Below, in pieces: positions 6,970 through 58,660 of a stretch of 64,000 bases of DNA. The DNA is taken from positions 1 to 64,000 of the forward strand of contig NW_021835997.1 in assembly GCF_006345805.1 (NCBI RefSeq), read 5' to 3'. The position numbers were made by a program, and so were the translations under genes. Numbering within the stretch: the stretch's first letter is position 1; every line of letters begins with the position of its first letter. The stretch comes from Octopus sinensis. Its lineage: Eukaryota. Under the pieces are notes generated by a model, which saw nothing but the letters and a program-made list of their open reading frames with translations, had not been told where the DNA came from and did not search any database.

Positions 6970-7959
6970 ATGTCTTCAACGAACAAATCACAACTTGAAA
7001 CATCTATTAATGGGGATGAAATCGTTATCCATAAAAATAATGTTTAGTTCTTTGGCTACCACGACATTGACTTGCTTGAAAACTACGGAATCGTTTATTT
7101 TTGTTATAAACATAGAACGTCGCCGACATCAAAAAACTAAAATCAGCAGGAATATGCACAATTAGAGTTTATATAGCAAGAAATAATTTAAGGGAATCCA
7201 AATGACCACAACCAAGAAACTCCTCGGAATTAAAGGAATTTCCGACACCAAAGTTGAAAAAATCAAAGAAAGCGCTCGTAAAATAACCGTAGACTGACTA
7301 ATCCCCACTTTATTAGGAAAGCACGTTTATAAGTGCCTCTGAATTTTCAATGAGAAGAGAACAGTGTTTCAGAGTACAAACAGGAAGCACTGAATTAGAG
7401 TAAGTTGAATATTGTTAGAAAAAGTTCAATTTTGGGTGGAGGAATCGAAAGTATGGCAATCACTGAGTTCTTTGGGGAATTCCGTTGTGGGAAGACTCAG
7501 TTAGCCCATACTCTGTGTGGTTAGTCCTGTCCAGTCAATATAAGTGAGTTCAACTGGGCAACTAAATGGCCATAAAGTGATGTATGTTGATACAGAAAAC
7601 ACATTGTTGGGATATTAATCTAAATTTGGTAGTAGACCTTCTAGATTGCGTCCAATTGCACTTCGATTTAAAGTCAATTTGGACGAAGCTTTGGAAAATG
7701 TGCTTTACAGTCGTGTTTATACCGGTTTATTAAGATTATTGACCTTAGGCGAACATCAAATGGAAATTATGGATCATGTAGCAGCCAAATTTTATGAGGA
7801 GCCTGGTGTTTTCAGACTATTAGTTTGATTGATTGATTAATTGGATAGATTGTGGATTCTGTTATGGCATTGTATCGAGTTGATTATTCTGGGAGAGGAG
7901 AATTGGCTGATCGACAACAAAAATTAGGCCAATTTCTATCTAAACTACAAAAAATAAGC
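6970..7959 (+). pseudogene. DMC1: Meiotic recombinase DMC1, 3'-truncated
   Basis: Exons joined over ~23-30 nt GT-AG introns give DIDLLENYGI|NVADIKKLKSAGICTI...[29 protein letters not shown]...YVDTENTF|RPSRL...EHQMEIMDHVAAKFYEEPGVFRLL|[37 protein letters not shown]. Homology then stops with no splice donor; the C-terminal ~85 aa are absent. Confidence 0.9.
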
Positions 7960-8460
7960 AATCTCTCCACCAACTCCCTAATGAAGGGATCACCACTACA
8001 CGACCAATATTGGTAGATGTGCGATATCAGTTCTCCCCCTTCTTGTCTAGTGGAGTCAGACACACTCCCCACCCAGACAACTCTCACTGATCATTCCCAG
8101 TGCTTTCAAAGTCTTTTTCATATCGTAAAAGGACACCTCAATTCGAGTCAAAATAATAATCCACAAGCTCTTGTTTGAGGGAGTATTGGAATGCCTACGT
8201 AACTAAGCTAGACAAATAACCTTCAGAACTAAGTATGGAGTGCCTGATTCCTCTCGATTGCCTGACATTGCCTGCACTTTGCCAAACAGCCAGCCAATTT
8301 CCCTCAGTCGGGAGGCCTGGTCTGCCAATGGCTGTGACAACTACACCTAATTTAACCCAAACTCCTTCTCTGCAGGGCTATACCCCAACTCAATGTTCGG
8401 GATTAGGTTTAAAACGTCGCTGATTACAAAATCTTGTTCCTTACTTTTCGACCACTAAAT
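7960..8460 (+). mobile_element. Possible degraded CRE-type non-LTR restriction-like endonuclease remnant
   Basis: RLPDIAC and FPSVGRPGLPMAVTTTP resemble the RPAD...GRPAALDVxVxSP region of CRE-like elements; frameshifted, weak. Confidence 0.3.
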
Positions 8461-8479
8461 GATCATTTCCACACAACTG

Positions 8480-11090
8480 CTAGTTTTTGGAACAATTTGT
8501 CGTCCAACCGGGAGAATCCTGTTTTCCGAGACAGAATGTTGTGAGTTTCGAAGTGACAGTGTGTGTCTGTGGAAGGGAAACCACATTTTTTGACAAAGTG
8601 ATAAATAAAGGCGACAAATCTTCCCGAATCATTCCTCGATTGCCGAATTCGTCTCAATAGTTCAAAGAGTCGAGTGATTTGCCGTCCTGGTCAAAAAATA
8701 GCCATCACTGCATCTCGAATAATCGGCAAAATTTCAGGCTACAGTCTGAAATCCATTTTTTCCAAATATCCCGTACTCCTCACTCACTTGACCTGTTTAA
8801 CGTCCAATGTCGACGAAAAGATGAAACGGTCTCCTACTGTCTCAATTTGTTGGAACAAGCACAATTTCTCTACACAACTCCCCGTTCTAGAGGTAAATGT
8901 GTTTATAATATCTCAGTTACTGCAAACGTGCTTTAATAAGCTGTATAATGAAAGAGAATTGTGAACAAATTCCTACGTGTTTCCAGATTGCTGCCTCATA
9001 TTTGCTGTGTCGACCTTTCTGAGACGTCGAATGTTCTGTCGCAGTTACTGAACGCGCAGTGGTTGGTAATAAACAAATGCTATGCCAGGCTGAGGGAGTA
9101 TCCATGTGTGTAATTACGACGATCTTCACCCAAAGGCCGAGGACTCGAACCGGGATGCGTTCAGATATGCATTTCTTGGTGTTTTTGGTTTGTACTATTC
9201 TAATGAACTCAGTGAACATTCACCGGGAGGAATACAAGACCATAGTCCACAACATTATCCTGGCAGTCGTCCGTCACATTACTATCATTGCTGTCACTAG
9301 AGATCTCGGTTTTTTGTTTTTGTTACTATCTTCAGGCATGACTCAAATGTCGGACATTCACGTTAAGAAGGAGACTACGTCCATTGTGCTGATGGATGCG
9401 TTTCTCGAGGCTCTGACTCTCGACCACTCCCTCTTTACTTCCGTGCAGTCTTGTATTTTTAATCTCATTGAAACTGCCTCGTGTGTCTGTCGTTCTAAGG
9501 AGAGGGTTTTGATTTGGCAGTATTGTAGGCTCTTAAACTGTCTTTTTTCGCCTAATTTTTTGAAAAGAGTTACAATTCGTGTTTTGGAGACATGTTGCCT
9601 TCCAAGTTTGGAGGGTATGTCCTTGCGGAATCACATCTGCAGTTGTCGGGGAATCCGCCTCATGCTCAACTTTATTCCTGACTTTACTATTCGCTATTCT
9701 TTGGAATGCGTCAAGGCTCTACTTTTTGTATTGGGTAATTTAAGTGAAGTGGTTGTATTTGCGGAGTTAATGTTACAGGCGTCCATCAGCGACATGTTTG
9801 GTTAGAACATTCTGCATTTTGTCATTTAGAATGCTCAGGCTGCCGCTATAAAGGATAAAAGATATTTCGATAGTTTTATGCTGGTGATGAAGACACTCAT
9901 TCACGAGGCCTTCTCTGTTTACCCGAATTCCCGCAAACTGGTTATTTGCTAAGTTGACAAAAACAGAGCCAAAGTCTGCTTGCCGATATTTATTTGAAGT
10001 CGCCTGATCTTTTGATGGATGCAATTGTCGAGAATAAGGACACAATAGTGCACTGTCTTCATTCTCTCCCCACGTGGATATTTAATGAAACTTTTTACGT
10101 CCGAGTCGGCTTGATTGTTTTGAGTTTTGATTATCCTGCAGGAGGGAATTATTTTCTTTCTCCCCAGGATTTCTCATTTGTGTGCTTATGATTTTTCATT
10201 GGAAAGCCACCGCAAATGTGTCGAGTTGGTCATTACCATTTTGGAAGATCCCGAAGAACGCCTGACAGCCATGAACTCATTTAAAGAAATGAACGAATAT
10301 ATCGAATGTCTTTTGAGTAGTGATTACGTACAGTTGACAGGATTCCTCTCTGCCTTAAGCAATGCCGAGTTTTGCAAGCACAGGACTTTTGGACTTCTTT
10401 GCATGTATTGGTACACCAGGAAGTGCCGATCCGAGAATTCGCCTTTTATTGCACTTCAAAGGTATATTTATCAGTCATTTTTAGTATCTCGAGTTTTTTA
10501 AATACGACCATAAAGTGGTAAAAAACATGATAAACGAGCAGTTTCAAAGATGAGTAATGTTTTTACCACAGATACCGACAGCTTTGAACTTTTCACCAAC
10601 CTTACCCATCTTTTCTTTTCTTTCAAACAGAGGCGATGATTAAACACTTTTAGTTTAATTGTGATGTTTACTGCCAAGATAACTCTAGAAAAGGGGTTGG
10701 ACTATATTGTTAATCAGAGGAGTACGGTGTTCTATTCCTTCAAAACAGGGTTCCTTTTTTTAACATTCAAAGAATTTTGCTCGGTGCCTTGAACAGTTCA
10801 GAATGATTGGGAAAATATATATTTGAAAATTTGCTATTCATCCAGGTTAATTATGATAGGCATATTGTCCAGGAAAGTGATAACCTGAGGATTCCCCTGC
10901 ACTACATTTTTTTAGATTTCCCGCGGAAGCAGTCAGTTACCTCCTCACTGATCTCCCCGCTCGTTCTCAGCAGCATATGAATTTCATGATGGTTGTTTGT
11001 CTTTATATATCGACAGAAAACATTTAAACACCCAGAGTGTCTTATCTCCATTTCATTGTCCAGACAAGATAACCAATTTGTGTTTTTGGT
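8480..11090 (+). CDS. ARM/HEAT-like helical repeat protein (unidentified, multi-exon, possibly partial)
   Basis: Co-oriented ORFs 8674-8964, 9059-9805, 9994-10191 and 10127-10501 with amphipathic Leu-rich helices (e.g. LECVKALLFVLGNLSE) separated by short GT-AG gaps; family not recognised. Confidence 0.45.
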
Positions 11091-12269: not shown

Positions 12270-12883
12270 ATGCTCGAGATTGTCGAAAAATGCTGACCCG
12301 AACTATTTCCAATCGTTTCTCTTGCATATTCTACGCTGAGCAGCCTGCTTTTTCGGGTAAAGTCATCAGGTCAGAATGTGGGATCCAACATGGTGACCCC
12401 CTCTTATTTGCTGTTTGTGTCGACCATGTGGTATTTTTTTGCCAATTAATTTTTAGTATTTGGACGACATCACTTTTGGAGGGTCGTTAAAGCAATAATG
12501 AAGGATTCTTCAGGATAATATTTGAATTCGCTAAAATTGGACTTTTACTAAATGACGCGAAATGTGAAGTAGCTGGACTCTCGGAGCCACTAACGCCCCA
12601 GATTGTTGCTTTTTTGGCCCTTTCGAGGAAGATTTGATCTATGTATAACCGCTCTTGATGATTTGTGATTTTGGGGTCCCCAATTTGTAACAAGGGAGTC
12701 GCGAAGGCCATCGCCTCGCAACGTGGAAAGATTTGGGTTTCATTTAAAGGTGTTTTTTGCTTAAATTATTTTATACATCCCACGTCTGACTGATCTGTTC
12801 CGTACATACAGTGTTTCCGCTCGAATGAGCAACTTTTGGCTTTGGATGACGTTGTTTCTGTGTCGTTACAGCTCCTTCTAAAT
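12270..12883 (+). mobile_element. Degraded CRE-like non-LTR reverse transcriptase fragment
   Basis: SECGIQHGDPLLF (QQGDPLGPLLF motif), IGLLLNDAKCEV, ILGSPI and IPRLTDLFRT across frameshifts. Confidence 0.75.
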
Positions 12884-12960
12884 CGGGGGTGTCAAAGATA
12901 CGGCCCCCGGGCCAGAGCTGGCCCGCGGACGATCTCAAATGGCCCGCGGTAAAAGTTTAA
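12884..12960 (+). mobile_element. hAT (Charlie-like) terminal fragment
   Basis: cgggggtgtcaaagatacggcccccgggccagagctggcccgcgg resembles the CAGGGGTGTCAAA...GGCCCGCGG hAT end; preceded by ttctaaat, close to the NTCTAGAN target preference. Confidence 0.6.
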
Positions 12961-13003
12961 AAGTGTATTTAAAATCTAAAATTATTATTTAAATAGTTAT
13001 ATT

Positions 13004-14051
13004 CCATAACTGAAACGGGCCAGACGTGTAACAATTTGGCCTTGCATTTTAACCTTCAAATGTCATTTAATTGTTGTCTGCCGGTAACTATTATTTTTGC
13101 AAATGAGAATAGCTAATGCAGTCAAAGATGATAATGAATATAATGATATTCTTCAGTATTTACAACATGAGAAATTTCCAGAGGATTGTCAAGAACACAA
13201 AGATCAAGATTTTTACAAAAATGCAAGAAGTTTCATTTTAATCGGAGGTATTTTCCTATCTCATTTCAGGAACACTTATTTAATGAAATAAATGGTGAAA
13301 TAATTTGTTTGAATGATCACGAACAATTAAATATCATTGTGATCGGATTCATTCTCAGTTTCACTTTGATAGAAAATGAAGATGGAACCGAAAAAACGGT
13401 TTTTTACTCTCAAATTAAAAAAATTTAAATAAATTGTTTTGAAATTATTTTTAATAAATCCCTGTAATAGTAGATTGAAAGTATGTTGAGATAGTATCTG
13501 TATCAAAAATGCCGCGGCCGAAGGCCGCATAGGGGAATAGTAGCTATCTTACAAATTTCGGCCGAAGGCCGTTAGGTAGGTAAGGCTTTATTTGATCAGA
13601 AAATCTCTTCTGTATTAACTTAAAAATAAATTAAATTTAAAGGAACTTCAGCTATTGTCCAAATAAGAGAATGATAACAAACTTAAAGATTTTAAACTAC
13701 ATTTTTAAAATTAAAGTAGACTAGGCCTTTATAATTCTTTAAGAATTTTCATTATTTCTATCATTTTATATTCTAGATAAAAATGAAACAATAACAAATT
13801 TTTAGAATGAAATTTATTAAAATAATATTATTTTTTTAAAGATAATTTATCAAATTTAATGGATAACCAATAATATTTTTTAAATAAATTTAAGTACATT
13901 ATATGTTGTTCATTAGATGTTGTTGTTCATTAGATGTTTCAGTTATGGCGCACCACATTATTCCAAAGTTTTGTTAATTGCTAATCAAGGTCATTATGCG
14001 GTTTTCTCAGGGTCAAAATGTTACACGTCTGGGCGCCCGTTTCAGTTATGG
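13004..14051. mobile_element. ~1.05-kb segment bounded by ~30-bp inverted repeats, containing an integrase-adjacent remnant
   Basis: 13004-13033 ccataactgaaacgggccagacgtgtaaca is the reverse complement of 14019-14051 apart from a small indel. A partial direct copy lies at ~13937-13960. Internal YNDILQYLQHEKFPED...FILIGG resembles the pre-zinc-finger region of Gypsy/Ginger integrases. Confidence 0.5.
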
Positions 14052-14289
14052 CGCGCCACATTTAACACCAAATAAAAATACAAGAATCTAGATTCTAGAA
14101 TATAAATAAAATAAAAAAATTATTACTTAAAAAATAATTAATTGTTTAATAATTTTATTTAAATAAATATATTTTGGATTTATATTATTCTAATTGTTTT
14201 TCTTGTCTTGTGCTGAAACTAACAGTAAATGTTTTAAATTCAACTAAAGATGAATTCGAATTCAACTCCCCAAAAGTTAACTTGGATCT

Positions 14290-15653
14290 CCATATATAAG
14301 AGAATGAACAGGAAGATGGGAGTGCATGTGTCTAAATATGAAGAATATCTTATCAGCGGAAGCAAAAGTCTTTGACGAAATTGATGGATCTAAGTATTTG
14401 TGAGTACTTGAGAGTTGAGCTAGAAAAATTTTTAAACCGGACATGATTAAAATAATTCTTGGAGAAATAATCACGAGAATTCAAAGATTAACAAATATAA
14501 AACTAATGGAGTGCACTTGTTCAAAGCAATTAATGAACACACTCTCTCACCGTACAACTATTACATTGGATTAGTCGATATTGGACCATTTAAATATGAA
14601 ATAGACAATACGATTTGGACAAAGTTAATAGAACACAAGATACATTTTCTACGGGAAGAAAACAGAGATTATACCTCCCCCGGAACAATTTTGGAGGAGG
14701 ATTGAGCTCAATTTCTCTTCTAAGTGTACTCATGCTTTTTTGATTTCCTACGGACTTAAAAAAACCAAAGTGGTGTGTGAAAAAGAAGCTTTTCGATTCT
14801 TCATTCTGAAATGCTCAAAAACTCATCTGGAGACTATTGAAGAATATTTGAAGCATAAATATCTTCTTGAAGAATCAGTTTTATTTAACAAAGAACTATT
14901 GGTCGGTGCCCAGAACAAGTACCTACTAGACCAGATTTTTTCAGAATGTTTTCATTCGGAGGATTTTGTGAATGTCAAAAACTCTAGTCACTGAGTGGCC
15001 AAAGGAAATAACTCCCACGGTCTGTCTCGTGCAAGATGGAAATTTATTTTTGCAGAACATAACTCAATGTGTTCTCACTGCATGAGATGGAAGAAGACCG
15101 TCGATCACTGTGCCATTAGATGTGAGAAGATGTTAAATGGAGATTATGTCAGGAGCCATGATGAAGTAGTGAGATACATCCACTTTCATTTTTGTCGAGA
15201 ATTTGGACTCAAGAACGATAAAAAACTCAAAACACAATCGGTAGAATCTGTACCGGCGAATGTGAAGGTTGAAATCAGACTGAAGACACTTCTAAATACA
15301 GACATAATCGTGGAACACAACAAACCCGATTTGTTTGTTTTCGATAAGATAAGGAATCAAATTTTGTTGGTGGAAGTTGGGATAACATCTTCTCAAAACT
15401 TACAACAAGTGGAAATCTAAAAATGAGAAAATATGACCTTTTATCCAAAGAGGTGGAATTAATCTATCATGCGAAAGTGAAAATAGTACCTATTATATTA
15501 ACATGGAATGGGCTGGTTACTCAAAAATTCCTACGATATGCACGTTGGTCTAACATCAGTGAGAGAACGCACGCATACATTCAATCACTCAGTGTAAAGA
15601 AAACCCTTGAAAACAAGATTGTTTCATATAGAAACAGAGTTGAAATGTGGTAA
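14290..15653 (+). mobile_element. Degraded RLE-type (R4/NeSL-like) non-LTR retrotransposon, 3' half
   Basis: KYL*VLE, LFKAINEH and RLYLPRNNFGGGL; CCHC-type CSHC...HC; HDEVVRYIH; HNKPDLFVFDK...LVEVGITS (PD-(D/E)xK nuclease); KYDLL; multiple stops and frameshifts. Confidence 0.85.
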
Positions 15654-16269
15654 AGAACGCTTGAATTGAACAAAAGAATAAACGAGATTTATCACCAAAT
15701 AAGTGAGTTTTCAACATCGCCAGTACCTCAAAGGGAAGGAATACCTAAATCACTTTGCGAATAGACGATGTAGCGACCAGAAAGAAAAGCTTAATTAATA
15801 TCTGAATGTTTAATTATCGATAGTTACTTTTAATATGCGAGTTATACAGGGAAAAATATTTTTAACACTATTAACATTTATTTTATTACACAAAACATAA
15901 TTGGAATAAATGTGAGGATGTCCGTACTGATGGAGAAAAATGTATGATCGGAAATTTTTCTGGAGTTATACCAAAAGTTAAGAAATGGCTCCAAATTGTA
16001 CTATTAGTCATTGTATTCTTCAACGCCTGGGATTTCTACATTAAAAACGGAAAACCCCAAAATAATTATACAACGACCCGGCATATTCATTGATTGCTTT
16101 GAACAAGTTGACTAAATTCAATTTTGTAATCATACCATTAATGATTCTCTATTGTACATCACATTATATTGTTTTTAGTCGTTATTCTTTCAATGAATGC
16201 TCATCTTATCTTATAAAAGTATCCTGAAAACTGTTTCTTCTTTTTAAAAGTGGTTTATATATTAAGTTT

Positions 16270-16620
16270 AAGGAAAATCGAGAAACACAATTACTCTTAT
16301 CGAGGTGGGGATCACTTCACAAAATTGTCTCAAACAGGTCGAAGTGGAAAAGTTCCACAAATACGACTTGCTGGCGAATGAACTGGGAGCAATCCACCGG
16401 GCGAAAGTAAAGATCGTCCCTGTCGTCATGACATGGGATGGAATAGTGTCAAAATCTTTCAAAAACCATCTGGCGGTGCTTGGTGTGGAAAACAGGGTGA
16501 GGACATACATCCAGACACTGGTGTTGGAAAAGATCTTAGAAAGCATGCAAGCCGAGACAAGGCATGGGCTATCGATGCCTGTTGAAGAGGTAGTCCCTGA
16601 ATCTATACCATTTTCAAGTC
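16270..16620 (+). mobile_element. Second RLE endonuclease C-terminal fragment of the same family
   Basis: EVGITSQNCLKQVEVEKFHKYDLLANELGAIHRAKVKIVPVVMTWDGIV...YIQTLVLEKILES, paralogous to 15360-15653. Confidence 0.8.
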
Positions 16621-17989
16621 AATTTGTCAATGCTTTAATTAATTGATTAAAAAATTAGTCACGTGTCTTTGTTTTGATGAGTCATTGTGTTTTTTTATAA
16701 GTTTATCAAAATACAGCTTACTTCTATTAGAACAACTATGTCGCTGATAATTAACAATCGCTATAAATCTCTGAATTTAAAAGAAAAAATCGCCATTTTT
16801 GAATACTGCAAAAAAACAATTAGGCGCAACATAATCTGAATCACTTTGGACGGGACTGCTTATTTTAAAGCTGAGAAGATTGATTTATGGAGTCACGATG
16901 GAATAGTGGGCCCTAAGAGGAAGAGTTGACATGAATCTGCCCATCCGTGCACAGAATGTGGGCCCTAAGAGGTTGATGGAATAAAACACTACAAATAACG
17001 AAAAGGGAATAACTATTAATTATAATTTGTTAATTTTTTATTAAGTTTAAAACAAGTTCTTGACCGTCAAGTGTTGAAAAAAACGAGTACATAAGTTGTT
17101 GAGGTTAATTACCATACTTAAGCTAGACTATTGAATGTAGTGCTCATACATACAGATAGCACAATACTGTAGCATCATTGGGAAACTACCATTGTATGAT
17201 AGTACTATGACATATGCACAAAAACAGACAAAACATGCAGATATAATATTTAACTTTACAAAATTATTAAAATATTTTACATAAAATAATATTATAATAA
17301 ATAATGTATTAAAAAAAGATATGAGTTTGAATTCATTTTTATAACTAGGACAAAGGAATTATGTTTCCTATAAAATAAATGTTCTCCGGCCTTTCATTTT
17401 TGATCAACAATCTTTGAAGCATGTGGAAGTCGAGAATTACATCAATACGATCTTTTTGCAAGCGAATTGAAGTTAATCCTTTAGAATCAATAAATAAAAT
17501 GCGCGATTTAAATTGTTAGTGTAATTTATAAGATCAGTTTTCCTCTGAGTTGACTATCTCTTCGTTTGTGAACTCGTCGTCCTGCCCTTCTCTTTCGCTT
17601 GAAGATTAGTACCGTCCGGAATGTCTTGTTGGTCATCAATCGTATCATTGGACTCCTCATTTGCCGAAAGAGCATTCGTCGAAATCACAATTTTAGGGAT
17701 TGTGTCTGATGGGACTTCTGTGGAATTTGTTCTTCCGTTTTTTTCAATGTTATCATCTGACTCTAATGACTGGAATAAAATATATATTGAAAATGAACTT
17801 GTGTAATTTTAGATGTTCGCTGGATTTTTCATCCCAATAATCTGTCGCCTCCCATGCTGGCTACATGTTACTTGTCAATAGATCATTTTACAAGGTTAGG
17901 TGTCATAATTAACACTGTTTCTACCATGCCTTACTCATATTTAATATTTTTAGCGCTATTTCTGAATTTCAACATTCCCTCTTTAAAAT

Positions 17990-18330
17990 GTTTTTCCCTA
18001 CATATAATAATAGTTTTTGTGAAAAATATCCAGAATATCAATCTATTCAAAAACACAAACAAGTTATTTGCATGGATAATGAAAGTGAAATGCAAACTAT
18101 TGCAGATTCTATTTATCGAAATAGCCATTCTGGAATTCGCAAACTGCAGCAGGAATGTTTACACTCTTATTTTGCGGAAAATTATAGAAGAGTTACAAAT
18201 AATGCACAATTTGTAAGTTTTCTATTCCACTTAAAGTACAAAATTTAAAAATTAATCGCAGATTTCCGATCTAAATTCCATGTTATTGCCAAAAGACCAA
18301 ATGGACGATTCCAAGGAGACTTTGACACGA
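17990..18330 (+). mobile_element. Ginger/Gypsy-like integrase remnant (zinc-binding region to start of core)
   Basis: HSGIRKLQQECLHSYF followed by HVIAKRPNGRFQGD; ICMDNESE resembles ICLNDHEQ at ~13310. Confidence 0.5.
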
Positions 18331-18539
18331 ATTCCAACAGACTTTATAAATTTTTCATAAAATCGACTAGTGGTTTATTTTATTAGATATATGAGATTAA
18401 GACACGTTCGGGGTATCTAAAATAATTAATATGAATCGAGTAAAAAAAAAGACGCTTAATTTTAATAAATTTTTTATTGTTGAAACGCTTATTACTTAGA
18501 ACCAATGCAATTAATTTTGACAGTCACTATGACATCAAC

Positions 18540-18770
18540 AAGAACTCCACAGATCTTCTCTCTACCAAAGACTTCTCCCGCAAGTCGACCTCCGACTTTT
18601 TGAACGCCCAAGAGACACTTCAGTTCTACTCTGACGTACGAGGAAATCAAGCGTTCAATTCAATCTTTCGGGAAAGCAGCTGTGGGGGCCTAGACGGACT
18701 ACGCCCAGGCCACTTAAAAGACCTTATTTCTCAAACGACTGCCGAGGCAGCCATCGACCGAGGTCTTTGA
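18540..18770 (+). mobile_element. CRE-like non-LTR RT N-terminal fragment
   Basis: SSCGGLDGLRPGHLKDL matches the GSAGGxDGLRPxHLKDL motif of CRE-like RTs. Confidence 0.7.
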
Positions 18771-20189
18771 ACCTTGCTTTCTTTGCGAATTTAGCAGTTT
18801 TAATCTCCTAAAGGACTAAAGAACGATTACCTCACAAAACTTAGAAGGTTTGATCACAAAAAGACTTTCAAACATCAAAATCTCGCTAAAGTTAAATACG
18901 TCGTGAAAATCGAGATATGGCGATAATATTATAGACGGAAATGCGGAACTGACAGACGAATATGTATGCATACGACTCCTGTACTGGAATAACTAGACTA
19001 TAATGTCAGGTTAAACCTATTTGATGTTTTATTTTGAACGAAATTTTGACAGATCTAGCGTAGTCCTTGCCTAGATGCTCTCAATTTTTCTGCCAATCCA
19101 AGCTACTGACAATGCTCCTGACCTTAGTTATGTTTGACCAGAGCGATTTTGTGTTGATGCGTTTGTCTTCCGCATTTTATTGGTCGATTTAGGGATCATT
19201 TCCTTTTTCACCGACTGAATTTTTGACACAAGGAAAACTTGGAGTCGGTGGGGGAAGAATTTGGTTGTGGAGAACTGACTCGAAGGACTAATTCACTACT
19301 TTATTTGCCGAGTCGGTGAGAGACTTTTTAGGCTTTTGTGGAGTATGACTGCTTTCTATGTACCAAGATGATCCATTCAGGTCTGCAGTGGTAGAGAAAT
19401 GTTTTACCTGTCAATATTTTAGAATAAATGTCAACGTGTCTGATTGATTTTGGGAGTTTGCTTGATTAGCGAGTGCAGTGGTACCTAAGAATCTTACTGT
19501 GGGAATTGCAATATTAGTAATCTTACTATCTTAATGTGGGCTGATGGCCAAATGCAAATACTCTTTACAATGTGGGAATTGCAATATTAGTATTATTCAA
19601 TTCAAATCGCTTAATTATAGTCAACAAAATTATCTAATTAAGATTCCAGATCGTCAGTGATTTCCTTCTTCGCTTGAAGAAGAGTTTGCCACAAACTTCC
19701 TTTTATTTTCCTTTTTCGTGTCAAGGTTTTTATTCAGCTAAGTGTCTTCTCCGCATTCCGATTTACAAATTAATTGGTATGTCCTTCTTATTTTTCAATA
19801 GATAACTTTCCATATGACTTTTAAGAATTTTGAAGAAAACTCCATTTCATGTCAAGATTAAAAAAAAATCTTTACTTTTGTTTCATAGAACCACCGCCAT
19901 TTCGTTTGCAAACAGTCGCATTTGTACAAAATTCTTCATTTTAACTCACTTTAAGCTGTCGTGTAAGATAATGTCCACTTCAATTAAAGTTACAGTCAAA
20001 ACCTTTTTTAATATACCATCGAAAAATGAGCTCCTTTTTACCGAAAATGAGATTCTGTTTTTCCATTTTTTTTCTATTTTCTTTGAACTCTTTTTTTAAT
20101 TTGCTTTTATTCGAATTTGAGCTTCCGAGTTTTAAAGCTAATTCTTTTATTTGCTCTAAAAGTCTCTAATTACAGAATCATGAATAATA

Positions 20190-21140: not shown

Positions 21141-21429
21141 TTTGAATTTTAGCATGCTAAAGTATGATTTTTCCTGAGAAAAACTGAAGCACGTCACCAT
21201 TTCAATCAGTATATTTTCCTGTAAATAAAATAAAATTGGATGAGCAATCGCAACTATTTATGATTATTAAACGAAAATGTAGTGGCGATAATTTGGTAAA
21301 TACTTGTATGTTTTTTAATGGAATTCGTTCTTCATCCCAGCATTTATGTTTATTATTGTTATTTTCGCACTGACGAAAAATCATAAGCTAAAGTTTTCCT
21401 TGTGGCACGGTTAGTATTCTTTTCCAGAT

Positions 21430-23045: not shown

Positions 23046-23049
23046 CTGC

Positions 23050-26308: not shown

Positions 26309-26334
26309 GCCAATTTGAAGTTGGTGTGCACACA

Positions 26335-26356
26335 CAGACAGACAGACAGACAGACA
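26335..26356. repeat. (CAGA)n microsatellite near Helitron 5' end
   Basis: cagacagacagacagacagaca. Confidence 0.9.
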
Positions 26357-42274: not shown

Positions 42275-45200
42275 AAGGGAGGAGAGATGAGAATTAGAGG
42301 GGGTGAATCATCCACGGGAGGCACTTTCTCTATCAACTGAGACACCTCCGTAGCCACATCCGTCAATCCATGACATGCAGCAGTTACATATGCAATTGTA
42401 TCTAAGGAATGAAGACAACTCTGATTGCTCTGTAATAACAAATTGATCCTCTCTTCCACATTCCCTTTCAGCAGGGATATCTGTGCATGCATATTCCTAT
42501 CTCCTTTGTGTTCGACTGGTCGCATAATCCTATCAAATGAACCTTGTTTTAACAGTTCTCCCAGCTTTTCGAGATTTCCAGTGACAACATACAACATGGA
42601 CAGTTTGTTCTAGTTCTTGACTGCCTGATATGCTCTTTCCGCGATCTGAATGTTTCCCTGCATCATAGCGGCGGCGGACAATTTATCCCAATAACAATTC
42701 TGGATCAGATTCAGCGCAGCATTATGAGCAGTCTGGAAAATATAAACACAGAAAACCTCAAGATCCCCACATTGCACTGCCAGTCTAAACTTTGTAGAGT
42801 CATCTTTCACAGAATGTAGTGCCAACTAAGGATATCCCTTCCTCTCGAGGTACAACACAATCGACTTGCCGATGAGTTTGGATTTGCGAATAATGTTCAG
42901 AACTTTATCAAACTCTCTCCCGACGATGACCAACTTGAATCAGAATTGTCGATTTGGAGTTTCTTCAGGCTTCCCTGTCGATCCAGAACATACAGCAGTG
43001 CCCCCTCCACTCTAATCAAGTAGAGTGGGAGATCGATAGTCCGGATTATCCAACAATCACTATTTCTATCACCTACTCAACCCAACCATTCACCAGACAA
43101 TAGTTTATGTGGTGTGTCGTGGAGTACACAAACACATTATTCTCGTCCCAGGCACCACTCTTCACTGAAAAACTCTCCTTATTTCGACACAAAATTTCCA
43201 TATTATTGTCACAAATATAAAAAACTACAAATCCAAAATTAAAAAACCTTTATCCGCTAGAATGGCCAAATATGAATGATTTTTTGACCAAACAACTCTC
43301 TTAACAAAAGGCACGCAAAGGGAGCAAACGACTCTGACATAAATTATCCATTTAATGTTACTTTTTCAGCTGCATGTCATACAACAAGACTTTATCATCA
43401 CAATAGTACAGGAATTGTCCACATATGGCTTGATAAATTGTCTTACATCCACTGATCTGGATTTTCTGAAATCTGCGGAATTATAATAAACAAAATACGG
43501 ATTGATTGGAATCCAAAACTATAAAACGATTTCTGCTCAGCCAAAACCCTTCACAGCCTCCGCAAGGCATATTGTCTATTTATTTATTAAATCTCCAAGA
43601 CCACGCTAAAAACCGAAATCGGCCTGAAAGATGCCGGGTCCCCTCTTGGTCTTCCAGGCTTCAGTATCGGCCTTATTAGGGCCTGTTTCCATATTGACGG
43701 AATCACGTCGTTGTTGATTGAATAGTTGAAAATGGATGTTAGGAACCTGACTCCTTCGACACCAAGGTTTTTTAAAAGAATGACGGGGATTTTGTCCATG
43801 CCGTGAGAATACGAAGATTTTGTAAAGTGCAAGGTATCTTCCACCTCCTTTAACGAGAGGAGGAGAGGTTCAGTCCGTTTTTTAGGCTTCTCTTGGAGGG
43901 AGTGAGTCGGATTTCTTGTGCTCTTTGTGTGCATTTTTCGCATAGAAATTCATGAGGTTGTTCACGTCTTTTTTATCGAAATCTTCAAAAGGTTCGGAAG
44001 CGTCCCCCCCGGCCACGTGCCGAATGGTTTTCCACACTTCACCCGTTGAACGATTACAGTTCACGGTAGAAAGAATGCGATTCCATTTCAAATTGGTTTG
44101 CCCTGATCACTGGTCTTCAATTCCTTGTTTAAATATCGGATGCGGGTAATTATGTCAGAAGACATTCGGTTTGACTTTTTGAGGCGATTTCTCTCCTTGG
44201 CCAGACCGGATATCCTTCGACTACAAGCAGCGTGAGGTGACGTTTAGGAATAGCCCTTGCTCTTGCTTCCAGAATGATCTTCGAGAAGAAGCCAGAGCTA
44301 AAGTTGTACAGATTGCAATTTTTTAGTCTCTTGTTCAATATCTCTTGGAACCATGGCCAGTTGACCGCTTTGTAATAGTATGGAATGGGAATTTTCCTGA
44401 TGACAACTTCTCTTTTGATCTTCACCGTTATCGAATTGTGATCGCTTCTCGTTTCATAGAAGACTGACTCCACTCCGTAGATGATGCGAGAGAAGGAGAG
44501 CATAAAGTTACATCAGGTGACGTAGGTTTGTCGGTCCCTATAAATAATAAATATCGAATTTTAGTTAGTCATTTAACATTTTTGTTAATGTATTGGGTAG
44601 AATAAATATTCCACCTTTTTTGTTCCTGTTGTATTCCAAACTGACAACTTCGTAAGATGAAGCCTCGGAGATCTCACTCCGCATCTGTAAACATTAAAGT
44701 AGTAAACAGACATAGAATATTAGAATCAACTGTTCCGACGGATTGAATGATAACGACGTGACTACACCACGTTTACTAAATTGGAAATATTGGCAGAACA
44801 GGACTACATTGCCATCAAAGACTCCTCTTCCGACCTCTCAAAATTGTACACCATGACATTAATTTTCATCAACCAAAACAGGGAATGGTCACTCAATGTC
44901 GATAAGGACGTTCTTTCCCGATTTTAAACACCATAAAGCCCGAGTCGTGACCTGCAAATAATAAAGTAAAACAATAAAACGACCTCCTGCGAACAGATTG
45001 ATAGCATTGTGACAAGTCAAACTCCAAAAACGACTATCGTATTTAAACCGGGTCTCACAACGCCTAAAATAGTCACAAACACAAAACTTTGAGTTTAAAT
45101 TCCAAATACGAATACTCCCATCTTCCGAATTACTAAGCAAGTACTCTTCTCTAGGGTGGAAGAGGACACGTTGGATGTGTGTCCCTCAACGTTCCATTCT

Positions 45201-45669
45201 CAATCAAGTCCCCATCTGCGTTTACTCAACAGAAACCCCACCCTTCGTTATCCGCATCAGTTTGACATCATCCCCACACGAGGCAATTGCACCCGAAACG
45301 GGATGAATGGCTACCCAGTTGACTCCGCGGTCGTGTTTTTCCAACGTTGCGGAACAAATAATTGGGGAATCACCAAAAAGTTCAGGAAAGCTATTCTCTC
45401 GTAATATTTCGTTGGCCATGTTTCCAGGAGTCGTCAAATTTTTAGAATGAAGACCTTACTGATTAAAAACCGCAAAAAGACTTGATATATTCCAAACCTT
45501 CAAAGTCGAATCGAGGCTTCCAGAGATGACATAATTCAAGAATAGATGGAACTGAGCACACATTGCGTAGTGCATGTGACCAGTCAGAATCCTGTTGGGG
45601 TCACACACAGAAAATAGACCCAAGACATGACCGAGACTGCCAATTCCATACTCTGATTGTCATGTCGTC
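42275..45669 (-). pseudogene. COPA: Coatomer alpha (COPA), truncated at both ends
   Basis: [95 protein letters not shown] and LYVVTGNLEKL. First ~110 aa and the C-terminal third are absent; small internal deletions. Confidence 0.9.
43590..44520 (-). mobile_element. I/Jockey-like LINE internal fragment (end of APE to start of RT) inside a COPA intron
   Basis: RSDHNSI, YKAVNWPWF and SHGMDKIPVILLKNL...IPSIWKQALIRPILKPG...SFRPIS; lies within GT-AG intron 43576-44614. Confidence 0.85.
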
Positions 45670-46057
45670 AAATGTGTTAACAGTAGACCTCCGAATTGGC
45701 TTTTTGTGGGCCTTGAGGAGTTCCAGCAACTCGAAGCATATCCTCATCCACTCCCGGGGAGACACAAACTCGGCTCCCCGGTCGGCTATTCGCCGAATCA
45801 GGTCAATGCAGTTTTCTTGCACTTTCTCATTTCTAAAGTAATAGAAGGGGGATATTCCTATTGCGGAGAATGGGGGTGAGACGGGGCAATATGTCCTTGA
45901 TTGGGGGGTTGATTTTAGCCATCCCAATCACATTGACGATGCTTTTTAGACCTGCCAATATACTCCCCAACACTTCCGGGTACTCTTCTCCCAAATACTC
46001 GTACAACACAACCAACAAATGATTCATCAGCTTATCCACCTGACATATTTTCAGCAC
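45669..46057 (-). pseudogene. SF3B1: Internal ~120-codon fragment of splicing factor SF3B1
   Basis: [30 protein letters not shown]...[16 protein letters not shown]|[53 protein letters not shown], near-identical to the SF3B1 HEAT region; retains a 25-nt intron. Confidence 0.93.
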
Positions 46058-46747
46058 GGTTCAACCAAGTGGATGGGGGCAGTCAAGTCCTCCTGGCGAC
46101 GGATGCGGTGGGGATGGGCCTCAATTTGTATTCCTCATGTTTGATTGCCAGAAATATACGGAGAATTATATTCATGACTGCCGGCAAGTTCGATAATCAA
46201 CTGCTTTCTATTTCCGACGCGAGGCAGATTTCGGGACGGGCAGGAAGGTTTAGTTCAGAGTTCGAAGGCGGACTTGTCTGTGCTACCAACAATTCCTCAT
46301 TAAAGTCGGTGAGGTCACTTCTCAGGAAGCCTCTCCCTCCCACAAACCAGGAAATGATGGCAATCACCTCCGAGATTGTCGAGTCTCTGACATATTACCT
46401 CCCTTCTGCTGATTTGTTGGAAATTATGGTTATTTCCCTTTTAAATATACACAGAGAGTGTTCGAGGGCTATGTAAGCTTGGACACCAAGTTGTATTGTG
46501 TTTCTCCCTCAAATAACCCCGTGAGACGACTGGCACAACTCATCGAGGATATTCCGTTAGATCCCCGTGTGGCTTACAGACTGTGTTGTGCGCCTGTGCC
46601 GGGATCTGACTATTGCTACTCTTTTTTCCGTGAAATAGCCTTGGTGGTGTCTCGAAGGGAGGTCATGTCTTATTACGTTTTGAGTCCTCTGCTTAAATAT
46701 CCGCCTCCAAAGTTACTACCATTGAGTCGTATCTCTGATTTGGAGAA
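46051..46747 (+). pseudogene. SUPV3L1: Internal fragment of mitochondrial RNA helicase SUV3
   Basis: VLLATDAVGMGLNL|NIRRIIF...QISGRAGRF...G.V; continues to CCAPV and LE, then fuses to LINE APE. Confidence 0.85.
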
Positions 46748-47275
46748 CAAATCGACAATTACAATTATAAATGTATATGCACCTACTTCTCCAAGAGCCT
46801 CTAAAAACCCGACGGAACTGGATGACTTTTATAGTTCACTCTCTACGACCCTTATGGAAATATCCACGAGCTATCTACTCTACATAAGCGGAGACTGGAA
46901 CGCTAAGATCGGAAAAGGGACCAAAGAACTGAGTTTCATGGGTACCCATGGGCAGAGGTTGGAGGAACATGTCTGGAGCAACTATGGTCAACTTCGCGAA
47001 CAATAAAAAATTATTCATTTGCAACACAGCATTCCAACACGCTGCACGACCTGGATCGGAGAGCGCAGAAACTCAGACGGACACTCAATCAAAATATATA
47101 ACCAAATTGACTACATACTGTGCCGACAATCACAGAAAGCTTTACTCTGTGACGCCAGAACATATGGAGGAACGCTAACATCGAGTGACCATAAACTATT
47201 GGTAATCAAACTTCTCCTATAGAGAAGATTTTGGATTAACAGAGTCAAAAACAGACACAGAGAAGCCAGAAAGAT
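46748..47275 (+). mobile_element. RTE-type LINE APE fragment (copy 1)
   Basis: IINVYAPTS...DDFYSSL...GDWNAKIG...NTAFQH...NQIDYIL...SDHKLL; ~47045-47272 nearly identical to ~56110-56335. Confidence 0.9.
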
Positions 47276-47808: not shown

Positions 47809-48615
47809 TTATTTCCATGCAGTATACCGCAAGTACTGTTTCTCGGATGGCAGAACTATTGTTCTAATAGCAGTAAAGCGGTTTATGGCTTCTTCATCAC
47901 TCAGAGAAGGAATAATAATACAATCGTCACCTTGCTACAAATATACTAAAGTAATTGTCAACCTTCCAATTAACTGGGGTGGCTAAGGCATGAACATCAG
48001 TCATAATGACAGAATCAATCACTCGTAAGAGCTCACTAAAATATTAAAACTACATAAACCTAACATTCCTTCCAGTAGTAGCCGGATAGAGAATACTAAG
48101 TCTCATGTTCATATTTTTATCAATCAAATAAACCTACAGATTAGTAAAACCAAGTAAAAAAAATTTAATATACCGCACGTGCCGGGAGAGTATTATTATC
48201 TGGGCCAATTTCTCGAGGGTCCAGCATCCCCAACTGGGTGGCAATTTTTCTTTTGGAATCGTCTATTATAGGAAATGGCAAACTCTCTGTTGTTATATTT
48301 CCATGTAGAAGAATGTCCTAATTATTTGCAGTGGAATTTGAATGTACTTTAATCCATTCTCGGTGGCTCTCCACGGTATCACAGGACAGGCCAATTAGTT
48401 TGACATTTCTTTGTTTAAATTCAATTGACCTTTTTGCTAGTTCAGCCAATTCGGTCGTACAGACCGGAGTAAAATCTCGTGGATGTGAGAAAAATAAACA
48501 CCAACTATATTTATGTATAAAAGTATTACCTTGATCCAATAAAACTGTAAAGATCAAAATCACCCATTGTGGTCTGCAGTTGAAAATTTGGGAACTTGTC
48601 GGACAGACGTAGCAT
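47809..48615 (-). CDS. PRDX6: 1-Cys peroxiredoxin (peroxiredoxin-6), complete, 5 short introns
   Basis: [11 protein letters not shown]...S|[19 protein letters not shown]...EWIK|DI...LPFPIIDD...LGMLDP...ARA|VYLID...[12 protein letters not shown]|...ATPVNWK|QGDDC...YLRYTAWK*. Confidence 0.93.
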
Positions 48616-49329: not shown

Positions 49330-50700
49330 CATTTTGGTCAACATTTTACTACACGTTTGCAAAGCCGAACTAAAATCACCCAACTCGGACTCGATGCAAC
49401 TCTTGATCAGGAAAAAGCTTAAATAAACGTCAAATTGAGTTCTACTTTGATGAGGACGGATATTGCATTAAAGAACTCTCCACACATTTGATGGCTGCTC
49501 CATAGTCTTTAGAAGCATTAAAAAGCAACACCAAAAGAGTCAAAGTAGTCTCTTTATGCCAATTAAGTCTGATAGCTAATTTGCAATAATGAAGAGCTCT
49601 ATCAATAGGGCGTAGTAAAGTGACAAGTGAAATGCAGGAAGATAGTCACGTGGGTCAGCTTCATGAGACCTAGAGGAAATCAGAATACCGGATTTGTACC
49701 TGTTCAAAAAATCTAATGCAGCGGATAGGTGAGTAGAAGATTGAGAAAAAATTTCCTGTCTTCTGGCAATCAGAACGTGATAGAGACCACAATAAAGTAA
49801 GGCACGAGAATGAAAAGGAGAAGAACCGTCACACAGATCTAATAGTTGTTTAGTATAATCCTCAAGTTTTTGGTCAATCGGCTATATTTATGTATTGAAA
49901 TTATTTACCAATGGACAATGTGGGTCAAAATGTATACAAATAATGTGTATAAGAATATCGATGTCTCCGGGGACAAGAGAATTACAAACTTTAAGAAAAT
50001 GATAACATTGTTTGTACTAATCAATAAAAAATAAATGTTTACTTTTTTTCTTGGGCCAGTGTAAATGCAAATTGCCGTAAGGGATAAAAATCCCCGAGAC
50101 AGTATTTAAGAATGTCCCACAATGCCTGAAATAAACTGAGAACAAATAACTGAATTGAGTCTACAGGGAGACGATGACTGCCCGAACAGTAGACAATAAT
50201 AATTCACCAATTTGACAGTTTTGGGGGATATTTCAATCTGGGAATCGGCAAGCTGTAAATTTAGACAAAAATATGTTCACCAGTAATGGTTTCATTAATT
50301 TTTGATAGACGCTTATCAAATAGCAAAGTTCCTCTTCCCGATTTAAATCAAGGAGACTAAAAACCTGTAATAAAATCATAAATACGTGGATTGGGATAGA
50401 CTTTGTCCCCCAACTCAGAAATAGACTCGGAAACTGATTCGTAGTTATCAAATGTGGTCTCATGAAATAAAAAATCAATGTATCGTTCAATTATACTCTG
50501 TTATGTTAATTCATCCAACTTTACCTTGTAAAAATTGGTCGATTTCTCAATGTTGTCAACAACTAGCAAATCTCTGAAAGCTCTTATGGCTTGTTTGGAA
50601 CAGAGGGACTTGGAAGCGGTTAACAAAACGCATCCAGGAGAGGGTGGCACAAGCGAGATAACTTTACTAACGTTATTTTGCGGTGTGCTTATTAATAATA
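49330..50700 (-). pseudogene. TTC7: TTC7/YPP1-like TPR protein internal fragment
   Basis: DPRDYLPAFHLSLYYA...ALHYCKLAIRLN...LLVLLFNASKDYGAAI...QYP...LIKSCIE...ALQTCSKML follows the TTC7 pattern; IRAFRDLL upstream; a deletion/frameshift is present. Confidence 0.55.
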
Positions 50701-55200: not shown

Positions 55201-55577
55201 AATAAATTAAATTAAAACTTTCATTAACTTTTAACTAATTTTTTTTTAGATTCATTTTTTATTCAGAAACCGAGATAGTTAGTCTTAATTAATTAAAGGA
55301 AAATGACTAAAACGAAAAATTGTTAACTAAAACGAAAAATTGTTAGCTATTTTAACTAATTGTTAACTAATTTGTCATAACACGGAATATAGGAGGCACA
55401 TGTAGATCGCAAAAGCTGGCATAAGTGATTATCAGTCAATTTATTTCGATATTTATTTTTTATGTGAATCATTTTACTGAAAATTGACTCACATAAATAA
55501 GTGGATCCGAACATTGAAGCATATTTATAAGCATTTATGAGTATATTCGGATATTTTTAGGCCAATAATAACATCAC

Positions 55578-56095
55578 ATGCCTAAATTTTCAGATTTTAA
55601 TTTTGATCTCCGAATATTAAGTGTCAAAATTGGTTGTTGTATTGACAGGGAATAGAAGACCTCGGATGGGCCGAACCAACCCAAATCCAAGAAAAGATAA
55701 TTTCACTTGTGGTGAAGGAAGGGACATTGTGGCTCGAGCCTGCACTGGCTCAGGAAAGACAGGCGCATTCCTCTTCCCCATCATCCAATCGACCCTCTCC
55801 ACAGTTTGCCACCCAAATCACGCCAAAGTGTCACTCTGATGACATAATCCGGATTGTTTTGTGCCCTACGAAGGAAGTATCTCACCAAACACACAAATTC
55901 CTCAAGAAAGTGTGCAAATATGCAGAAAAAGTGACCTCAGTCAACCTCTCCGACGACACAAGTGTGGAATTTCAGGAATATGTCCACGTCTCCTATTTAA
56001 GGTCGTTGCTGACGAACTACAAGCCGAATATAATAATTTCGACATACAAGCCTCTACTCCACCATTTGCACTCCCAAAAGATCCAAATCAACCCA
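55578..56095 (+). pseudogene. DDX56: DEAD-box helicase DDX56/DBP9, 5' fragment
   Basis: MPKFSDFNFDLRILS|GIEDLGWAEPTQIQE...GRDIVARACTGSGKTGAF...LCPTKE; breaks before the DEAD box at a LINE junction. DEAD-box identity is firm, the DDX56 assignment less so. Confidence 0.75.
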
Positions 56096-57098
56096 CTGCA
56101 AGGCATATCACGACCTGGATCGGAGAACGCAGAAACTCAGACGGACACTCAATCAAAATATATAACCAAATTGACTACATACTGTGCCGACAATCACAGA
56201 AAGCTTTACTCTGTGACGCCAGAACATATGGAGGAACGCTAACATCGAGTGACCATAAACTATTGGTAATCAAACTTCTCCTAAAGAGAAGATTTTGGAT
56301 TAACAGAGTCGAAAACAGACACAGAGAAGCCAGATTTGCAGTCGAACTCTTAAGAAACTATCCTGTCTACAGAAATAACTACTCAGCTAAAATATCACAA
56401 ATCATAAAATCGATCAATCTCAATTTACCTGCTGGAAGTATATGGAATAAACTCAAAAACAAAATAAAATCAGTGGCTAAACATACGATTAGGACAATTC
56501 CCAAAACCTTCAAAGGGATACACGACCCACAAATAGATTACCTCTCTTATATACAAAAGGATTTACGTATCAAACACATAAATACCCAAAACCGAGTGAA
56601 AGTAGCTGAGTTCAAAATTCAAAGTAACAAATCATGCGCGAAATCAAGAAAAAATGTCAGAAAAACTACGAAACAAGGCTACAAAACCTTGCAAATGAAG
56701 TGGGGAAGTACAAAAACGAAGCGCAAATGTTTGCATCTGTAAAGATGCTAGCGCGAAAGAAGAAATCGGAAAACCTAACAATTCATGATGAGCTCGGAAA
56801 AACGATTTAAAACAACCAGGAACGCACAGACACTATAGTCGACCACTTTGAAAAATATTTCAATTTCGAAAACGGAGAAACGCTTTACCCTTTCGATGGA
56901 GCGCCCAGAAAACTATCTAAAGAAATCACCTTATCGCAAGTTAAAATATCTGTGTCCAGACTAAACAACTCAAAAGCTCCAGATCCAGATAATGTTAATG
57001 CAGAACTCATAAAATATGCTCATGAAGAGCTCCAAAAACTTATTACTTACATTTTGAACAAAACTTTTGAAAAACACTCCAGAATTAATATCGGAAAG
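56096..57098 (+). mobile_element. RTE-type LINE fragment (copy 2; end of APE to start of RT)
   Basis: RHITTWIG...NQIDYIL...SDHKLL and SRLNNSKAPDPDNVNAELIKY. Confidence 0.9.
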
Positions 57099-58628: not shown

Positions 58629-58660
58629 TATATAGTGGCGTGCGGTCCTCTTTGTCTCTT

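Follow-up and report, generated by a model that had tools for sequence, protein, structure and literature searches.

Truncated, intron-bearing gene pieces form a patchwork in a dicyemid-like contig of the Octopus sinensis assembly

RESULTS

Broken genes that keep their introns

The window analysed here is a stretch of 64,000 nucleotides, bases 1-64000 of contig VCDQ01005470.1 (353,329 bp) in GCA_006345805.1, the Octopus sinensis assembly (PMC10700109), and window coordinates are those of the record; this placement came from an exact match to the 481-residue open reading frame at 34524-35969 (-). It contains a patchwork of broken genes that is real and far beyond chance. DMC1, UBA1, COPA, SF3B1, SUV3 and a gene with EGF and TSP1 domains (the EGF/TSP1 gene) are present as truncated or internally deleted pieces in which GT-AG introns have been kept. 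An earlier note on this DNA had described such a patchwork of ten genes; these six were confirmed, whereas the evidence is weak for the other four names (TRRAP, HIRA, TTC7 and DDX56), the TRRAP and HIRA matches lying below threshold. The description of the genes as present only in pieces holds for the internal fragments, but DMC1 and HIRA keep their start codons and look like genes cut down in place. The stretch is probably a redundant copy of a gene-dense segment that is decaying by deletions and transposon insertions in a dicyemid genome, with working copies elsewhere.

The map was built from a six-frame translation, from which open reading frames (ORFs) of at least 45 residues were concatenated and scanned with Pfam, and was refined by sequence searches of the PDB and by a purpose-written protein-to-DNA spliced aligner. 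At high divergence this aligner produces spurious stops and jumps, among them a DMC1 'stop' at 7522 and artefacts in the SF3B1 intron and the far part of HIRA, and only events checked by eye were used. The window is AT-rich, with a guanine-cytosine content of ~33% in the background and 40-53% in the coding patches. Rfam returned zero RNA families in the window. Three further contigs of the assembly enter the comparison: VCDQ01013399.1 (L002), VCDQ01005863.1 (L003) and VCDQ01000492.1 (L004, 1.29 Mb). The genes and gene pieces of the patchwork are, from left to right:

6970..7959 (+): DMC1, 3'-truncated, with its own start codon, nine or ten exons and 23-28-nt introns
7956..8039 (-): gamma-tubulin complex protein (GCP) fragment, tail-to-tail with the end of DMC1, overlap of at most 4 bases
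9155..10501 (+): TRRAP-like piece a/b, tentative, HEAT ring region (Pfam Tra1_ring)
23002..23602 (+): TRRAP-like piece c, tentative (Pfam Tra1_ring)
27301..36669 (-): 9.4-kb block (EGF/TSP1 gene, H3, UBA1) common with L002, both window ends cut inside genes
27299 to ~31000 (-): EGF/TSP1 gene, 3'-truncated, cut at 27301, running into the C-terminal piece of a long interspersed nuclear element (LINE)
33118..33551 (+): H3-like histone, intact, 136 residues, one 26-nt intron (Pfam Histone)
~33798..36669 (-): UBA1 pseudogene copy, 5'-truncated in the first adenylation-domain exon, frameshifts near 36473 and 34534
39850..41689 (-): HIRA-like gene, tentative, start codon at 41689, middle propeller blades gone
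42277..45669 (-): COPA pseudogene fragment, human residues ~114-800 of 1224 (PDB COPA, E 6e-70)
45670..46060 (-): SF3B1 internal fragment, human residues 942-1096 of 1304 (PDB SF3B1, E 1e-52)
46060..46745 (+): SUV3 (SUPV3L1) internal fragment (PDB SUPV3L1, E 2e-21, chain residues 361-577)
47812..48612 (-): PRDX6, six exons with introns of 25, 30, 40, 24 and 28 nt (Pfam AhpC-TSA)
49342..49881 (-): TTC7-like pieces, tentative (PDB TTC7B, E 0.004, residues 519-576; weak Pfam TPR)
55587..56089 (+): N-terminal piece of a DEAD-box helicase (DDX56-like), ended by a LINE at 56109

Across the fragments and neighbouring genes, 34 GT-AG introns were measured, with lengths of 22-40 nt (median 26, mean 26.6). 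Where a retrocopy lacks introns and carries transcribed sequence only, the pieces here keep these 34 introns, and the 9.4-kb block includes intergenic DNA and genes on both strands. No poly(A) tract was seen after the fragments in the junction views. The proposal that the pieces were copied as DNA and not retroposed is upheld by these features, and the tiny introns were retained because copying took place at the DNA level. The intact state proposed for H3 and PRDX6 was also corroborated, both giving spliced alignments without lesions. Human PRDX6 residues 5-221 of 224 aligned with zero stops or frameshifts, and the gene is apparently intact. The H3-like protein matches human H3.3 at 106 of 136 residues in the spliced alignment.

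A fuller copy of the EGF/TSP1-H3-UBA1 block

L002 runs collinear with the 9.4-kb block, with blastn identities of 96.8-99% (~98% overall). By substitution, the two copies have diverged by 1.2% over the UBA1 coding sequence (24 substitutions against 3 indels), by 1.45% over the EGF gene and by 2.8% over the intergenic DNA, where 92 substitutions fall within 3.3 kb. Relative to L002 the window copy carries seven deletions, of 25, 3 and 1 bp in UBA1 and of 100, 173, 62 and 65 bp in the EGF gene. Each of the four EGF-gene deletions (62-173 bp) is edged by 1-3 bp of microhomology, and EGF-domain coding sequence has been lost with them. The L002 EGF gene continues for more than 3 kb beyond the point at which the window copy ends, and encodes there a membrane anchor as well as further EGF-CA and TSP1 domains.

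UBA1 is recognised by a PDB match with an E-value of 6e-152 over chain residues ~85-1000 of 1010. Its frame is shifted in the window by the 25-bp deletion near 36473 and the 1-bp deletion near 34534, while the UBA1 coding sequence of L002 is unbroken. The N-terminal exon of UBA1, present in L002 and L003, is lost from the window copy, which is cut at 36669. L003 holds a third UBA1 copy, with the N-terminal exon, an internal deletion of 417 bp and a 3' truncation. A breakpoint at ~36669 common to the three contigs was considered and rejected: both L002 and L003 extend past this position, and the truncation is private to the window.

A non-processed pseudogene has a more complete, close copy elsewhere, as UBA1 and the EGF gene have on L002, and carries disabling lesions, as found in COPA, UBA1 and the EGF gene. 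The earlier note had reasoned that the cell must hold working copies elsewhere; such copies are shown for the UBA1 block only, with UBA1 and the EGF gene on L002. The comparison with paralogues that the note had called for, including divergence and the ratio of non-synonymous to synonymous substitution rates (dN/dS), was run for the UBA1/EGF block alone and gave the 1.2-2.8% substitutions described above and a UBA1 dN/dS between window and L002 of ~0.6, from only 7.5 synonymous and 15.5 non-synonymous differences.

As a separate observation, the H3-like protein is unusually divergent, being only 78% identical to human H3.3 with an altered N-terminal tail; its gene occurs on L002 as well as in the window.

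Lesions and extent of the other fragments

COPA carries several lesions. At ~42828 an in-frame TAG (KGYP*LALH) replaces a conserved glutamate codon, and at ~42612 a second (AVKN*NKLS) replaces a conserved aromatic codon. These nonsense codons are substitutions, which long-read indel errors cannot produce. The fragment also contains at least two frameshifts, at ~42941 and ~45200, and a LINE insert of roughly 1 kb at ~43560-44720. Matches for COPA reach 33-44% identity at best in a 5.8-billion-protein database. The adjoining SF3B1 fragment aligns at 94 of 120 identical positions; its 25-nt intron offers no GT donor with which the conserved RLTPILRNR would be preserved. SF3B1 and COPA are fused in frame, forming a chimeric ORF at 45601-45927 (-). 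A query of the large protein database with the joined SF3B1 and COPA sequence returned only distant COPA orthologues (at most 44%) and no parent from the same organism.

DMC1 corresponds to human residues 21-257 of 340 in the spliced alignment, and the PDB match favours DMC1 (E 2e-35, residues 166-257) over RAD51 (4e-19). Its last 83 residues, and with them the C-terminal exons, occur nowhere in the 64-kb window. On its other side stands the 5' part of VPS13 (1..6636, -), which has its start codon at 6636 and runs off the contig start. VPS13 matches Pfam VPS13_N at profile positions 1-47 and 146-187, with the peptide MVFESVAVEF at 6607-6636, and is apparently in its native place; it serves here as context only. 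The divergent start codons of VPS13 (-) and DMC1 (+) are 334 bp apart (6636-6970), a spacing small enough to suggest that both genes use one bidirectional promoter, the genome being very compact. The GCP fragment at the other end of DMC1 matches Pfam GCP_N_terminal (E 2.3e-6) at profile positions 104-167 of 297.

The TRRAP-like pieces were placed by Tra1_ring matches, a/b with an E-value of 6.8e-5, which falls short of the curated cut-off, at profile positions 147-311 of 1682, and c with a sub-threshold E-value of 5e-4 at positions 1397-1433 of 1682. The PDB sequence search gave no match to them. The two pieces are collinear on one strand with ~10 kb of transposon debris between them. A 111-bp direct repeat was also noted in this region, at 11148-11258 and 11623-11733 with 92.8% identity. 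The HIRA-like gene matches Pfam Beta-prop_CAF1B_HIR1 with an E-value of 8.5e-6, below the cut-off, and likewise found no match in the PDB sequence search; residues 1-90, 260-361 and 746-828 are presumably present, as judged by alignment to a human sequence. The DEAD-box piece matches Pfam DEAD (E 1.4e-4) at profile positions 44-114 of 167, with frameshifts probable, and DDX56 is its tentative specific orthologue by alignment to a human sequence.

Direct junctions and co-oriented LINE pieces

At three places, 7956-7959, 45669/45670 and 46060, internal pieces of unrelated genes adjoin without a spacer. The three differ in orientation: DMC1(+) and GCP(-) meet tail-to-tail, SF3B1(-) and COPA(-) lie on the same strand and in frame, and SUV3(+) and SF3B1(-) meet head-to-head. 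Other pieces end against fragments of LINEs:

26954..27298 (-): LINE C-terminal piece, standing directly in place of the EGF gene's 3' part
41700..42270 (-): LINE reverse-transcriptase (RT) fragment between the COPA end and the HIRA start, with RT-motif ORFs
46758..47270 (+): LINE endonuclease-domain piece, after SUV3 in one ORF (46458-47006)
56109..57400 (+): 5'-truncated LINE after the DDX56-like piece, in the same orientation

A single ORF spans the EGF exon and the LINE C-terminal motif, and L002 has EGF domains at the same point. The 226-bp stretch 47045-47270 is repeated at 56109-56334. Four genes are truncated where they meet a LINE piece, at 27.3 kb (EGF), 42.27 kb (COPA), 46.75 kb (SUV3) and 56.1 kb (DDX56), and each has the orientation of its LINE piece. 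The chance expectation for this agreement is 1 in 16, and it hints at LINE-associated break repair.

The earlier note had also placed a Helitron in the window. What is found is a C-terminal helicase remnant, accompanied by a satellite:

23919..~24450 (-): Helitron Pif1-type helicase C-terminal remnant (Pfam Pif1_2B_dom, E 6e-11)
25045..26306: 94-bp tandem repeat, 13.4 copies (Tandem Repeats Finder)

The helicase remnant is 98.7% identical to L004 17905-18205, and the satellite ~94% identical to L004 18930-20369. Remnant and satellite (window 23919-24216 and 24728-26398) recur in the same order at L004 17905-20369 with 87-99% identity, and together look like a repeated Helitron-derived unit that carries the satellite. 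The L004 unit starts at the equivalent of window 23919 and does not include the TRRAP-like piece at 23002-23602. A simple scan of the minus strand over 22.8-24.1 kb found no perfect 3' hairpin with CTRR of the Helitron type, imperfect hairpins lying outside that scan.

A dicyemid-like genome within the host assembly

Among animals, introns shorter than 30 nt are reported only from myxobolid myxozoans and Dicyema japonicum (PMC13644364), and the median intron of a Dicyema sp. is 27 bp (PMC6543705). The window median of 26 nt agrees with the dicyemid pattern, in which introns are mostly <30 nt and published medians are ~26-27 (PMC6543705, PMC13644364). D. japonicum was isolated from O. sinensis and has a genome of 67.5 Mb with 36.7% GC, 48.9% repeats and many LINE copies (PMC6736024). 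The contig itself comes from an O. sinensis assembly, an association with a cephalopod host such as a dicyemid would have. Dicyemids are renal-sac parasites of this octopus, and long introns are typical of octopus genes. Judged from the sequence, the window has neither the mollusc-like proteins nor the long introns of an octopus nuclear genome. Its proteins are 33-47% identical to their best database matches; UBA1 is at most ~47% identical to anything in the 5.8-billion-protein database and 40% identical to the UBA1 of Crassostrea (oyster). Anything closer comes only from RefSeq models that bear the Octopus sinensis label and lie on other unplaced contigs, and for UBA1 no relative at 47-90% identity was present in the protein database searched.

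Because intron sizes, host and protein divergence all fit, the window and its related contigs very probably belong to a dicyemid genome co-assembled with that of the octopus host, in line with the earlier guess of a dicyemid. An origin in a ciliate, an apicomplexan parasite or a nucleomorph was ruled out by the metazoan-type content (EGF-CA/TSP1, LINE, Tc1, HIRA-like). At least four contigs look like co-assembled dicyemid, namely VCDQ01005470.1, VCDQ01013399.1, VCDQ01005863.1 and VCDQ01000492.1, grouped by their tiny-intron, highly divergent genes and shared young transposon families. The RefSeq proteins XP_029655530.1, XP_029654955.1 and XP_029653915.1 would accordingly appear to be mislabelled as octopus and to belong to the parasite. 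The literature searched contains no mention of dicyemid contamination of the O. sinensis assembly.

Standard gene predictors also appear to mishandle these tiny introns. At L002 10001-12016 (= window 34700-34830) the RefSeq UBA1 model reads through two introns of 25 and 23 nt (48 nt together, in frame), and the same model places a 33-nt intron where one of 24 nt is the better fit.

DISCUSSION

Erosion of a redundant copy

The reading that we consider probable begins with a copy of a gene-dense segment that was no longer needed. Such a copy would have been eroded by deletions, from tens of bases to kilobases, with 1-3 bp of microhomology at their edges, by point mutations, and by insertions of LINE, Tc1 and Helitron-type elements. 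One deletion with its ends inside two adjacent genes would leave two internal pieces joined directly. Same-strand neighbours would then yield the SF3B1/COPA and HIRA/UBA1 junctions, divergent neighbours the head-to-head SUV3/SF3B1 junction and convergent neighbours the tail-to-tail DMC1/GCP junction. Deletions of 25 to 417 bp are seen directly in the UBA1 and EGF copies. Erosion in place fits because DMC1 and HIRA have native 5' ends and the TRRAP-like pieces are collinear. We infer the step of deletion between neighbours; it is simpler than an end joining of separate pieces and fits every orientation. The earlier idea of a graveyard of decaying duplicates made by end joining survives in its first half, given the nonsense codons, frameshifts, microhomology deletions and three UBA1 copies damaged in different ways; end joining is not required.

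Several points weigh against this account. No intact partner was found for COPA, SF3B1, SUV3, DMC1, HIRA, TRRAP, TTC7 or DDX56, the rest of the assembly not having been searched as DNA. The ancestral neighbourhood is unseen, and L002, which ends in transposons 9 kb upstream of UBA1, stops short of any check of the HIRA adjacency. With their native 5' ends, DMC1 and HIRA could be sole copies degraded in place. The dN/dS value depends on just 23 substitutions. No dicyemid sequences surfaced among the database matches, which leaves two possibilities, a database without dicyemid data or an organism of another kind. Intact partners for the fragments outside the UBA1 block, a past as neighbours for the joined pieces and the dicyemid identity would each have to hold for the account to apply in full.

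Other explanations

The direct junctions could instead have been made by stitching copies from unlinked loci together at double-strand breaks, whether by filler-DNA capture, end joining, a chromothripsis-like event or template switching, in which case the stretch would be a true mosaic. The absence of spacers, the overlaps of 0-4 bp and the occurrence of all three relative orientations suit such an origin, as do the transposon pieces, likewise cut at arbitrary internal points, and the flanks of the 9.4-kb block, which are unrelated to those of its partner. It does not account for the apparently native divergent pair of DMC1 and VPS13, the start codon kept by HIRA or the TRRAP-like pieces, which are collinear on one strand. 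Small deletions are documented directly while insertion of a foreign piece is not, and a single deletion between neighbours yields every junction; stitching is on this evidence unlikely. Capture or movement by transposons, either of the Helitron or Pack type or through template switching or break patching by a LINE reverse transcriptase, was suggested in the earlier note for the Helitron case. The helicase remnant adjoins TRRAP-like piece c and the four truncations that meet LINEs are co-oriented, an arrangement with a 1 in 16 chance. Against Helitron capture, no terminus with the 3' hairpin and CTRR was found in the scan, and the helicase-satellite unit recurs on L004 without the TRRAP-like piece; the kept introns and a block with intergenic DNA and genes on both strands speak against capture in general, and target-primed reverse transcription would require LINE 3' ends, whereas three of the four pieces are other parts of a LINE. 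The Helitron proposal is not borne out, and capture or movement by any of these elements is highly improbable.

Eliminated DNA of other animals combines satellite, transposons and redundant gene pieces, and these are found together in this region. Dicyemids are reported to undergo chromatin elimination and differential amplification and to contain circular DNAs (PMC6543705), which gives some ground for a developmental rearrangement, with the stretch as germline-limited DNA, as a somatically deleted version or as re-integrated extrachromosomal circles. Yet the window and L002 differ by 1.2-2.8% substitutions and not by deletions alone, and this substitution divergence argues that the two are different loci or haplotypes and not soma and germline versions of one. 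PRDX6 and H3 inside the stretch also look intact. We regard developmental rearrangement as very unlikely. A related suggestion, which we hold to be quite unlikely, is that the patchwork reflects the dicyemid's own rearrangement biology, as a germline-limited or dispensable segment or a degenerating non-recombining haplotype that sheds redundant copies of housekeeping and meiotic genes by microhomology deletions. The circular DNAs reported from dicyemids might be products of these very deletions.

The earlier note further allowed for chimeras of assembly or amplification. Such an artefact would consist of chimeric long reads or misjoins in the low-coverage genome of a contaminant. Contaminant coverage is probably below that of the host, and single-base frameshifts such as that at 34534, but only those, could be consensus errors. 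What separates the copies is mostly substitution (in the UBA1 coding sequence, 24 substitutions to 3 indels); the COPA nonsense codons are substitutions as well, and there is a third UBA1 copy with different damage. Pieces down to 0.4 kb are unlike library chimeras, and pieces of 0.1-0.7 kb with at least ten junctions in 50 kb and microhomology deletions are unlike chimeras of ligation or amplification. An artefact is extremely unlikely, and this candidate of the note is not supported.

Comparison with known systems

The closest likeness of a redundant segment in decay is to the non-processed pseudogenes of primate pericentromeric and subtelomeric segmental-duplication mosaics, which are also DNA-level copies with intron-exon structure kept, arbitrary cuts and juxtaposed gene pieces. 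They share a divergence of a few percent from a fuller partner, stops, frameshifts and deletions, and a setting of repeats and satellite. Primate pieces, however, measure tens to hundreds of kb, whereas those here measure 0.1-9 kb in a tiny compact genome with 26-nt introns, and the juxtapositions here may have come about by local deletion between former neighbours, with no transposition of segments. Gene capture by plant Helitrons and Pack-MULEs likewise sets intron-bearing fragments side by side in both orientations with some chimeric frames. It differs from the present case, where termini were not found, the Helitron is a remnant, the L004 unit lacks a gene piece and the block has three genes with intergenic DNA. 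Germline-restricted or eliminated DNA (lamprey, Ascaris, the songbird germline-restricted chromosome, ciliate internal eliminated sequences) resembles the window in its redundant gene copies, transposons and satellite and in belonging to a lineage with reported chromatin diminution; its mark is differential presence between cell types, whereas here the copies differ by substitutions too. Parasite or symbiont contigs in host assemblies show the same combination of their own intron size, divergence and transposon families with unplaced contigs and host-labelled RefSeq proteins; here the contigs are long (0.1-1.3 Mb) and so also a resource. The stretch is a new example of a non-processed pseudogene mosaic in an unusual compact parasite genome, and not a new kind of feature.

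At least four parasite-like contigs (0.1-1.3 Mb) and RefSeq proteins in the O. sinensis reference will mislead gene comparisons among cephalopods. Dicyemid genomes are hard to assemble, one short-read attempt having reached an N50 of 942 bp (PMC6543705), and long-read dicyemid contigs that passed unnoticed in a host assembly are for that reason useful. In this stretch a very compact animal genome can be seen to rid itself of redundant copies, by kb-scale and small microhomology deletions and transposon insertion, with direct junctions and in-frame chimeric ORFs as products. It also supplies precise loci at which a link between such decay and dicyemid chromatin elimination can be tested. Should the patchwork indeed reflect the rearrangement biology of dicyemids, these long-read contigs would reveal the substrates and junctions of their chromatin diminution at base level for the first time.

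OTHER FEATURES OF THE WINDOW

The remaining features flank or interrupt the patchwork:

12400..22980: mobile-element debris, including an integrase remnant (Pfam rve fragment, retroelement-like ORFs)
~52.9 kb (+): ankyrin repeats
57449-58700 (-): Tc1/mariner element, transposase split over two ORFs
58709-61470: LINE with a 740-residue endonuclease/RT ORF2 and an A-rich tail
61788-62156 (-): ISXO2/IS1595-like DDE transposase ORF (Pfam E 1e-5)
near the window end (+): SLC7 permease start, running off the window end

For the LINE ORF2, 1.8 billion representative proteins yielded a single relative above 35% identity, XP_029653915.1 (69%), encoded on VCDQ01000492.1, a contig that also has a tiny-intron gene. 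The family appears lineage-specific and is possibly still active. The exact ORFs of the LINE and of one EGF exon gave no database record. The 5' part of the Tc1/mariner element is 97.7% identical to L003 15448-15836, and the family is young because of this identity. The DDE ORF at 61788-62156 is probably a fragment of a Merlin-type DNA transposon.

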